A stretch of 64,000 nt of DNA from Bugula neritina (taxonomy: Eukaryota > Animalia > Bryozoa). Numbering within the stretch: position 1 is the first letter of the stretch; every line of letters starts with the position of its first letter. A model generated the notes under the pieces. That model saw only the letters and a list, made by a program, of their open reading frames with translations, was not told the DNA's origin and searched no databases. A program made the position numbers and the translations under genes. Of this stretch, positions 24,601 to 32,186 are shown piece by piece. The DNA lies in contig OZ037772.1 in assembly GCA_964035545.1 (NCBI GenBank), forward strand, positions 5,584,233 to 5,648,232, in the 5' to 3' direction.

Positions 24601-24662
24601 TTTATCAAGCGAAGGCTACTACAGCTGATCAAATTCGTACATTTAACAAAGATGGCAGCGCC

Positions 24663-26937
24663 CAGTGTGGTATATTAAGAGTGTTGACTTTAAACCATGA
24701 AAAATCATTATGTCGCTAATGGTACCGCAAGTTTATATAAGATATAAAGGAAAAATTTTGCCACTTTTGTGATTTTATTTTTTTTTTATATTATGTGTCC
24801 ATTTTTTTTAGTTTTGTTTATTGGTAAAGTTTTTAAACATATTTTCAATACATATAAAATTTAAAAAAAAATTAAAACCTAATCATGCACGTAAATACAA
24901 AGTTATAAAGTTTAAGCTTCGCTGTGATTACAATGTGAATATGAATTGAATAATGCTTGCAATAACCATTTTACACAAAATACGTTACAGTTGCTATAAA
25001 TGTAAGACTAGTAAATTGGATGCAAATAGGCACGGTAATACTATTTAATTTATGCTATTTTTGAAATTTGTAGTAAATATTCAGCATGTATTATATATAT
25101 ATATATATATATATATATATATATATATATATATATATATATATATATATATATATATATATATATATATATATATATATATATATATATATATATATAT
25201 ATATATATATATATATATATATATATATATATATATATATATATATATATTATAATAATATATTATATATTTTTATATTATAATTGTTATATTATATACA
25301 TATTATATAAGTATAATAATATTATATAATATATATATATATTATAATAATATATTATATATTTTTATATTATAATTGTTATATTATATATATATTATAT
25401 AAGTATAATAAAATTATATATAATATATATATTATAATAATATATTATATAATATAATAATATAATATATTATTATATTATATATTATATTATATATATA
25501 TTATATATATATAATATCATATAAAATATATTATTATATTGTATTATTTACAAAATATATATATATATATTATAATAATATATTATATATTATTATATAT
25601 TATATATTATATTATTATATATATATTATACAAGTATAATAATATTATATATAATATATATATATATAATATAATAATATATATATATATTAGAATAATA
25701 TATTATATATTATTATATTAAATATTATATTATATATATATTATATATATATATATTATCATATGAAATATATTATTATATTATATTATTTATAATATAT
25801 ATATATATATATTATAATAATATATTATATATTATTATATATTATATACTATATTACATTATATATATATATATATATATATTATACAAGTATAATAATA
25901 TTATATATAATATATATATATTTTATAATAATATATATATATTTTAATAATATATTATATATTATTATATTATATATTATATTATATATATATAATATCA
26001 TATATAATATATTATTATATTATATATTATATTATATATGATATATATATATATTATAATAATATATTATACAATAATATATTATATATTATATATATAA
26101 TAATATTATATATAATATATATATATATTATAATATTATATTATATATTATATTATATATATTATATATATAATAATATCATATATAATATATATAATAT
26201 ATTATTATATTATATATTATATTATATATATAATAATATCATATATAATATATTATTATATTATATATTAAATTATATACATTATATATATATAATGATA
26301 TTATATATAATATATATATATATACATATAATAATATTATATATTATATATATATATAATAATATTATATATATATATATATAATAATATTATATATATA
26401 TATATATATATATATATATATATATATATATATATATATATATATATATATATATATATATATATATATATATATATATATATATATATATATATATACA
26501 TGCCAAATATTTAATACAAAATTCAAAAATAGCATAAATTAAATAGTATTACCGTGCCTTTTTGCATCCAATTAACTAGTCTTACATTTATAGCAACTGT
26601 AACGTATTTTGTGTATAATGGTTATTGCAAGCATTATTCAATTCATATTCACATTAAAATCACAGCGAAGCTTTAACTTTATAGCTTTGTATTTATGTGC
26701 ATGATTGAGTTTTAATTTTTCTTTTAATTTTATGTGCATTAAAAACGTGTTTAAAAACTTTACCAATAAAAAAAATAAAAAATTGTACACATAAAATAGA
26801 AAAAAAATAAAATAACAAAAGTGGCAAAATTTTTCCCTTATAACTTATATAAACTCGCGGTACCAATCTCGGCATAATGGCGCCCATATGATTCCGTAAG
26901 ATTTGCTAATGGCAACACTCTTAAATATACCACACTG
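24663..26937. mobile_element. Non-autonomous hAT-type foldback DNA transposon, 2275 bp, 8-bp TSD GCAGCGCC
   Basis: TIR cagtgtggtatat(t)taagagtgtt at both ends; TSD at 24655-24662 and 26938-26945; ~430-bp imperfect inverted arms around a TA-rich core; no transposase ORF. Confidence 0.92.
25089..26498. repeat. ~1.4 kb (TA)n / TA-rich low-complexity core of the transposon
   Basis: Pure (TA)n at ~25093-25250 and ~26391-26498 with degenerate tattata between. Confidence 0.97.
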
Positions 26938-30075: not shown

Positions 30076-30186
30076 GCACTGTATTCGGTGTCTATCATCC
30101 CACCTATTATGTCGATTTTTGTTTCTGTTACATGCTTGTGAAATGAGTGTTTTTATCACTCGACTGTATTATTACTAGAATCACAG

Positions 30187-32186
30187 CAATATTCTGGTGT
30201 TCTGTATTCAATTAGATGATCTCTCAGGGAAACATCTGTTATGTCACCTGTATGACTACGATCAGTTTGTGAAGACGGAGAAGGTTGGAGTTGTCCAACT
30301 ACGTTTAAATAGTCTACCATATGATGAGTCATTATACGTAGAGAAACACATTGACAGATGTCTACCTGAGTCACATGACCATGAAGAGGTGAATATATTT
30401 CATTATTTAAGAATCACAGTACACAGTGAATACAGTATTCTAAATAAAATAAAACTACATATAATAATGAATATAACATTTGATATTATAGTATTTACAT
30501 TATGCATATGTAATGCACCTGTGTGTATTGCATTCATCATAAATTAATATGTTTTTATGTAGTTATATGAAATGTGTTTATAATGTATATGCAAAAGAAA
30601 TGTAAATATATATTAAATGCAAGCAGCGAAGTGTATATGTGTACACGGCTTTATTATCTATTTATTTATAGTATTATATATGTTTTACAAATTATCCTTT
30701 AGAATTATGTCGGAGAGCTGCTGTTTTCCGTGAAGAGCACAAAGGCTAAAGATAATCTTACGCTCACCTTTTTCTTTGCTAAAGCAAAAGATTTACACAT
30801 AGAAGATGAAATCGCAGTACTCGGTAAGCAACTTCAAAGATAGCTGACGCTTTAAAAGCTGTGTTAATGTGAACAATATATAATTTTCACTAAAGTGCAT
30901 ATAAAAAGAGTGATGTATATTTTACAATTATTGGATAATCAAACTTTTAAAGTTTTCTAACATATTCCATGCTTAACAGTCAGATTTTGAAATTGTTTTC
31001 AAGTGTAAAAAGGGTTTAATTTTGAAAGGATAATGAAAGAGAGCCCCATGTGGTGCAATGGTAGCATACTTCCTTCCGACTCGGAGGACTCGTCTTGGGT
31101 TTAAATCCTAGTGGGGGCAAAAGTTTTACATGTTATTTCAACCTCTCGTAAAGTTTTATAGCAGTTATAGTAATCCGAGGTGATTATAAGACCGGGGGGG
31201 GGGGGGAGGGGGGGTGTGTGAGGCAGTAGTATAGAAGAGCCAGCAGAGTTTTAAAGAACTGGGTGGGACGTATTGTTGAGTTGAATCAACAGCCCCTGTG
31301 GTGCAATGGTAGCGTGCTTACTTGTAAGCCGAAAGTCTGTGGTGCGACTCCTGTTGGGGACCAATTCCTGATAGAGATATAATATATTTTATAGGAATAT
31401 GATATATTTTACAATTATCAGATACTCAAACTCTTAATTTTTAAAAATATTTCAGGCCTAACGGTAAGAGTGACGGTGCTAGAAGATGGAAAGAAGTTGA
31501 AGAAGAAACATACTATAGATAACATCAAAGTGACTACTAATCCACTCTTCAACCAGGAGATAGTTCTAGCTCTGCCTCAACACGTGAACCTAGCTGATAT
31601 GAGTATAGTCGTAGACTTGTGTAAAGTGAAAATCAGTAGTTATGAGGTGAGGGCGTCTACCAAGGAGGTCCGCTGTTTTGTAGATATTATTTCATATATC
31701 AACATTTCTATAGCATAACCTGGAAACTCGAGCTATGTTAAGGCTGAGTTTAAGTCACTTAGACTCACTTGAACACTTGAGTTATATTGCTATGGTCGGT
31801 TGCCTTTTATTTAAGAATATACTTTAAAAATAATTAGTGTTTAAATTTTTTCTTTATCAAAATTTTGGTAAACTTGGAAAAAAAAATTTCGTCATAATTA
31901 ATATCTTGAACAAAAATGCTCAGCAATTTAGTCACTATTTGCTCAGTTTCTAATAATCAGCAGATGTGCTGTCAACTCCACCCATGGTACCTGCTGGGCA
32001 CCTGCTCACACACTATAAATACATACTGACACTTATACTTGACAGGTGATTGGTAGAGTGTACATCAGTGCAGACGGTGACAAGAGAGGAGCTGAACATT
32101 GGAGAGAGCTTCAGCATTCTCTCAATACCAACAATAAGAGTTTGGAGTGGTGGCACCAGCTGAAGAAAGTAGCCAAGGGGAGCTGA
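30187..32186 (+). CDS. Synaptotagmin-type C2 exons, copy 2: 30187(or 30179)-30388, 30703-30823, 31456-31646, 32046-32186
   Basis: Near-identical to copy 1, open frame, same splice sites. Confidence 0.85.

Follow-up and report, generated by a model that had tools for sequence, protein, structure and literature searches.

A 64,000-nt window of the Bugula neritina genome (C8:5584233-5648232 of a 216-Mb assembly, contig C8; coordinates below are positions in this window unless C8 is named) carries on the plus strand, at 24652-32186, a gene in which seven exons of the PTGES2 type are followed by four C2 exons of the synaptotagmin type, all with AG/GT borders and open frames. The explanation favoured here, to which a probability of about 0.75 is given, is that this gene is one of nine chimeras formed at the joint of a tandem segmental duplication, that it is transcribed and spliced out of frame, and that it yields a non-functional truncated PTGES2. 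An earlier account of the same stretch, made by inspection of the letters (the sequence-only reading), had proposed an in-frame, membrane-targetable fusion protein of 616 aa, created by deletion or ectopic recombination and co-amplified with TRIM genes, with a dead by-product as fallback.

RNA evidence was taken from spliced assembled contigs of four runs from four studies (one of them, X1, was deposited as an RNA library of a symbiont metagenome); such contigs show the presence of an isoform and not its absence, and each of the nine copies is a possible source. Position 30822 is G in all four runs and C in the window copy. All introns of both halves were found spliced (GT..AG) in the contigs of the four runs.

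Exon 1 of the PTGES2 part was found in two pieces: its start, ATG followed by GCAGCGCC (24652..24662, +; flanks read directly), and its remainder, a low-complexity N-terminal region (26938..27477, +; PTGES2 frame open; joint 27477/27922, GT..AG, in X1, X5 and X6), the two being separated by an insertion that is described below. Exon 2 (27922..28044, +) contains the start of the glutaredoxin-like domain (Pfam Glutaredoxin, 4.8e-7) with the CPFC motif, which is kept in all copies; its best match among solved structures was membrane-associated prostaglandin E synthase 2 (mPGES-2; PDB 1Z9H, E=3.8e-10). Exons 3-6 and their introns occupy 28127..29507 (+; exons 28127-28219, 28748-28874, 28991-29087 and 29417-29507; frames, and GT..AG joints in RNA contigs). 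Exon 7 (29772..29893, +), the last PTGES2 exon present, ends with ...GGRLKR and AA before GTAAGT and thus has a phase-2 donor. The phase of this donor is that of the sequence-only reading; exons 2-7 were open, with AG/GT borders and with their introns spliced in RNA contigs. In one X1 contig 28872→29415 was joined, by which exon 5 is skipped and exon 4 is connected to exon 6; this alternative or aberrant splice was seen in one run only. The C-terminal GST-like helical domain (YMGG…PNLADL motif and last helix) is incomplete in the window gene and in all other chimeras; the exon with the FMGG/PNLADL motif, which had been reported as missing, was found nowhere in the window and is single-copy in the genome (C8:10109625-10109508).

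The first C2 exon (30216..30388, +) encodes the second half of C2A and has its native phase-1 acceptor (Pfam C2, 0.0048). The C2B exons follow at 30703..32186 (+; 30703-30823, 31456-31646 and 32046-32186, stop 32184-32186; frames and RNA joints); the middle one (31456-31646, 63 aa) matched synaptotagmin-1 C2B in PDB at 9e-5, including the polybasic KKLKKK. In Pfam searches with single exons only Glutaredoxin was above threshold, the C2 matches being sub-threshold, and PDB sequence searches were more informative. The chimera enters C2A halfway, without the preceding …FEESFLFETE, and continues with the C2B exons; it does not hold two complete tandem C2 domains. The calcium-binding aspartates of the C2 loops, a set that the sequence-only reading gave as absent from C2B, were judged by eye only. 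As already stated in the sequence-only reading, the chimeric locus has no synaptotagmin N-terminal or anchor exon, the upstream C2A exon being confined to 10.36 Mb of C8.

The two halves were joined in RNA contigs at 29893→30216. This joint was present in two of the four runs, X1 (one contig, 30-nt short side) and X6 (22 nt in two contigs, with ATGATCTC as a further 8-nt loose end); the parental continuations were seen as loose ends in all four. The donor is in phase 2 and the acceptor in phase 1, so the frame ends at the joint, which reads …AAA AGG AA/A TGA, and the C2 exons are left untranslated; the protein is ~401 aa long and ends with …GGRLKRK. The unspliced message gives the same protein end, the intron beginning with AAG TAA. 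Three further introns lie downstream of the junction stop. By the usual rule a message with a stop upstream of introns is a likely target of nonsense-mediated decay, and the chimeric mRNA is probably such a target.

Other routes to a longer product were considered. Skipping of exons 5-7 would be in frame and was rejected, no such joint being found in the RNA contigs; later donors within the minisatellite of the junction intron were rejected since the frame would end immediately at AAG TAA; micro-exons drawn from the repeat units leave the phase unchanged; and separate translation of the C2 part was discarded since no in-frame ATG precedes the late part of C2B.

The exon with CPFC and the C2B exon were each found ten times in the genome, in all cases on C8. 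Mapping of all exons gave nine chimeric genes, one PTGES2-only copy (10.11 Mb, P) and one C2-only copy (10.36 Mb, S). The chimeras A1, A2 (the window gene) and A3 are plus-strand genes at 5.58-5.67 Mb, and B1-B6 are minus-strand genes at 10.295-10.158 Mb. The reading covered S without its last two C2 exons, A1 and B1 apart from exon 1, A3 short of its last exons, and the 5.6 Mb cluster inside its edges. The 3' part of A1 lies within the window (255..3287, +; self-comparison and exon mapping) and consists of exon 7 (255-376), a longer minisatellite and the C2 exons 1407-1579, 1892-2012, 2556-2746 and 3147-3287. The same junction had been claimed for this copy, and it was indeed found there (exon 7 end 376, native acceptor 1407).

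The origin of each half was traced by the sequences into which the RNA contigs run. Contigs with exon 7 continue into 221-255 nt foreign to the window (…RLKRK-YGLEDDVRQS…); this continuation occurs once in the genome, 194 nt past exon 7 of the 10.11 Mb copy. The exon concerned (YGLEDDVRQS…YMGGATPNLADL, encoding YGLEDDVRQSLYKAINDWLEGIGPNRKYMGGATPNLADL) matches residues 212-248 of 1Z9H (E=5.5e-8), and it is followed by the last PTGES2 exon, AVYGVMSS… (AVYGVMSSIEGCQAFKDL…). By this exon content P is the intact PTGES2 gene. On the other side, contigs enter the first C2 exon from foreign upstream sequence (…FEESFLFETE; loose ends before 30214). A 30-nt loose end of this upstream C2A exon had no genome match at ≤3 mismatches, the assembly copy differing by more; the exon (…PVFEESFLFETE) was located by a shorter degenerate pattern that included the donor (one match) and occurs once, in the 10.36 Mb copy, ~450 nt upstream of the first C2 exon there. 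It encodes the first half of C2A, and another C2A-like open frame is found further upstream. S is accordingly classed by its exons as an intact synaptotagmin-like gene, read to a point short of its anchor. Location of the intact parental genes had been named in the sequence-only reading as a check of its proposal; they lie one at each edge of the array.

Read along the minus strand, C8 has S (10.36 Mb), then B1…B6, then P (10.11 Mb). This order matches a tandem duplication of a segment reaching from inside S to inside P, by which the outer copies stay whole; origin by deletion, as proposed earlier, is rejected in favour of this duplication junction. The copies, parents included, are 93-97% alike and show no grouping by cluster.

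The chimeric intron (29894..30215, +) was compared with both intact parents, analysed by tandem repeat finder and, in its acceptor region, read in all copies. In every chimera it opens with 59 nt from the start of PTGES2 intron 7, continues with a minisatellite and ~100 nt of unassigned sequence, and closes with the terminal 47 nt of the S intron; the breakpoints are common to all chimeras. Identical composition in every copy points to one junction, made once and then amplified. The minisatellite (29892-30070) has 28-bp units (6.4 units by tandem repeat finder), each with a GTAAGT consensus donor; the intact PTGES2 has ~2 units and the chimeras have more, in varying number. In A1 the minisatellite extends over 375-1267, and related 28-bp arrays were seen on other contigs. 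For the ~100 nt between the minisatellite and the remnant of the S intron, alignment to the S intron was only ~2.7 sd above shuffles.

A minisatellite of variable length in the junction intron, together with copies only 93-97% alike, could also be produced in the assembly itself, by a mis-join across the repeat or by uncollapsed haplotypes. That the chimeras are such an artefact is barely credible: the joined form was present in RNA contigs of two independent studies, the nine copies differ in minisatellite length and have private substitutions and private lesions, and the parents stand at the two ends of the array, just where a true duplication would leave them.

The following course is proposed for the preferred explanation, that of an amplified duplication junction. 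S and P would once have been genes of one strand, separated by RING-finger (TRIM-like) genes. With one breakpoint in the S intron that interrupts C2A and the other in P intron 7, the duplication would have put PTGES2 exons 1-7 ahead of the last four C2 exons, and amplification of this unit would have given six chimeras between the intact S and P at 10.1-10.36 Mb. The three chimeras at 5.58-5.67 Mb, that of the window included, may form a secondary cluster copied from units of the array. The chimeras keep the PTGES2 promoter and are transcribed, with the exon 7 donor spliced to the native C2 acceptor; the frame then ends with …GGRLKRK-stop, which leaves the C2 exons as an untranslated tail.

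The acceptor proposed in the sequence-only reading is a cryptic CAG at 30184-30186. Its joining to exon 7 would give a fusion of ~618 aa (PTGES2 front, half C2A, C2B) that could be kept by selection. The arithmetic of this frame is sound: a similar model rebuilt with donor 29893 and acceptor 30186 was open in A2 and gave 618 aa against the 616 aa stated earlier. The AG itself results from an A-to-G change that is present in six of the nine chimeras (A1, A2, A3, B3, B5 and B6) and absent from parent S, and missense changes in the C2 exons are three times rarer than neutral (data below). The expected joint of exon 7 to 30187, however, was in no RNA contig of the four runs, whereas the 30216 joint was seen; the AG is missing in B1, B2 and B4 (S, B2 and B4 read ACAACAAT at this place, and B1 has a small deletion there); among the six copies with the AG, A3, B5 and B6 have a stop or frameshift in the C2 exons, and A2 and B3 have a broken exon 1; and a truncated GST-like domain with half a C2 domain would be unlikely to fold, by judgement and not by a predicted fold. 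A selected fusion of this kind is held to be very unlikely. An in-frame fusion protein is thus not supported, the compatible phases not being those of the splice actually used. Of the earlier proposal, the PTGES2::synaptotagmin chimera co-amplified with RING-finger (TRIM-like) genes stands, and the in-frame membrane-targetable fusion is not supported, given the stop at the joint, the AG missing in 3/9 copies and the lesions in 6/9; acceptor 30186 gives way to the joint 29893→30216, and the fallback of a dead by-product comes close to the present result.

Disabling lesions were found in six of the nine chimeras: A2, transposon-like insertion in exon 1; A3, stop in the first C2 exon; B2, stop in exon 5, with exon 11 (the last) not found; B3, stop in exon 1; B5, 1-nt deletion in the second C2 exon; B6, 5' end of exon 1 replaced and a stop in the first C2 exon.

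The insertion in A2 (24663..26937, 2275 bp, no strand assigned) is a foldback element with terminal inverted repeats (TIRs) starting with CAGTGTGG and a core of (AT)n-rich satellite. Its arms are several hundred bp long, the inverted arms 24767-25091 and 26496-26820 being 89% complementary. The 8 bp GCAGCGCC that follow the ATG form the left copy of a target-site duplication and are repeated at 26938-26945, to the right of the insertion. An 8-bp target duplication together with terminal inverted repeats is the signature of hAT-type elements, and the insertion is taken by us to belong to a hAT-like family. It splits exon 1 after codon 4 in A2 only and is absent from P, B2, B3, B4 and B5; uninterrupted copies have the exon 1 start ...AAAGATGGCAGCGCCCTGTGGC (MAAPCGK) and read ATGGCAGCGCCCTGTGGC across the insertion site. 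Its presence in a single copy gives it the look of a recent insertion. The start at 24652 on which the sequence-only reading had relied is cut off by these 2275 bp from the rest of exon 1, so that the 616-aa frame would also need in-frame removal of the insertion.

Substitutions were counted as changes private to single chimeras, and the neutral expectation was derived from the rate and spectrum of private intron changes in the same copies. PTGES2 exons 2-7: synonymous, 15 observed, 19.8 expected; missense plus nonsense, 14 observed, 53 expected. C2 exons: synonymous, 13 observed, 18.5 expected; missense plus nonsense, 16 observed, 49 expected. For the C2 exons of the two window copies, 7 synonymous and 4 nonsynonymous differences were counted, near the 8 and 5 that had been estimated by eye.

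Several of the results weigh against a non-functional product. Missense changes are ~3.4 times rarer than the intron-based neutral expectation, with synonymous changes as expected; taken alone, this deficit looks like purifying selection on both halves, including the C2 exons that are untranslated in the observed splice. A1, B1 and B4 are free of lesions in the parts read (exon 1 of A1 and B1 being unread). The chimeric joint is supported by assembled contigs from two of the four runs, whose shorter sides measure 30 and 22 nt, and a rarer in-frame isoform could escape the contigs. A minor in-frame isoform in the copies that bear the CAG, with selection on a PTGES2-C2 fusion, would explain the missense deficit of the C2 exons; little chance is given to it.

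The deficit in exons 2-7 could alternatively mean that the truncated PTGES2 (glutaredoxin-like domain and partial helical domain, …GGRLKRK) is kept for a use of its own, with the C2 exons as 3' tail only; its role might be that of a thiol or haem-binding protein, or of a partner by which the full-length dimer is modulated. Exons 1-7 are transcribed and correctly spliced, and the same protein end results with or without splicing (intron AAG TAA), which is in line with this possibility. On the other hand, the PTGES2 part has lesions in four of the seven chimeras with a readable exon 1 (A2, B2, B3 and B6), the conserved GST-like core (1Z9H 212-248 and beyond) is missing, and the equal missense deficit of the C2 exons would be left unexplained. 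On balance a useful truncated PTGES2 is considered unlikely.

In the explanation by a non-functional duplication product, the low missense rate is attributed to gene conversion with the intact parents P and S, as judged from allele sharing across the copies and not from individually mapped tracts. All four gametes were found at 30-40% of adjacent informative site pairs in both halves, and minority alleles of P and S recur among the chimeras in subsets that keep changing. Missense changes would be few because the sequence has recently passed through a selected parent gene, parental alleles outside the assembly included. Homogenisation of pseudogenes by conversion with functional paralogues belongs to the established theory of concerted evolution of tandem families; the chimeras would resemble such pseudogenes in the mosaic sharing of variants and in an apparent missense constraint in copies with stops. 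If gene conversion explains the low missense rate, the array is a case of pseudogene-like copies kept clean by functional neighbours; if it fails to do so, the chimeras would have a hidden function still to be found.

Chimeric genes are known to arise from tandem duplications that disregard gene boundaries, and most of them are lost (PMC5460883); exon shuffling by such duplications has been surveyed in Drosophila yakuba (PMC5460883, PMC4069613). The Bugula chimeras agree with these in that the 5' part of one gene is followed by the 3' part of another, the 5' promoter is kept and the product transcribed, intact parents stand at the edges and many copies decay; they differ in the further amplification of the joint, which exists as nine copies spread over two clusters, in a splice that breaks the frame, and in an exchange of sequence between copies and parents. 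With mPGES-2 (1Z9H/2PBJ) they share the glutaredoxin-like domain with CPFC and the first GST-like helices, but the last two exons (1Z9H residues ~210 to end) are lacking and present only in the 10.11 Mb copy. With synaptotagmins (Syt1 C2B, 2R83) they share an alignable C2B exon and an exon layout that, in the intact gene, follows on from a genuine C2A exon; unlike synaptotagmins, they lack the N-terminal part and one half of C2A, and in the RNA seen the C2 exons stand behind a stop. By its exon content the window gene is neither a full member of the PTGES2 family nor a synaptotagmin. The event is ordinary in kind and unusually well documented: a clean, traceable duplication-made chimera, with parents, junction, nine copies, transcripts and decay all in one genome. 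It also cautions against calling such junctions new proteins, since a frame could be drawn by eye across the joint and the observed splice puts a stop there.

Four near-identical RING-finger exons (CTICLS…CGIC) are contained in the amplified unit, at 4986-5150, 13475-13639, 33902-34066 and 55520-55684; they matched zf-RING_2 at ~4e-5, below the Pfam cut-off, and the genes to which they belong gave no PDB match. A sub-threshold B-box-like match and long frames with weak beta-propeller matches (9100-9855, 19209-20021, 36927-37844, 46944-47882 and 59606-60448) were also obtained. The co-amplified genes fit a TRIM-like type as far as these matches go; co-amplification of RING-finger genes, part of the earlier account, thus holds, and their identity as TRIMs is only partly shown.

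The intron between the first and the middle C2B exon contains two tRNA-like stretches (31045-31125 and 31290-31365; …GTGGTGCAATGGTAGC…), in which ARAGORN called no tRNA and which are probably copies of a short interspersed nuclear element (SINE); one RNA run has contigs covering 31244-31424. In intron 6 of the PTGES2 part a short GC-rich tandem repeat of 13-15-bp units (GGCGTGTCTTGTG) was observed at 29601-29681; its length varies between copies.

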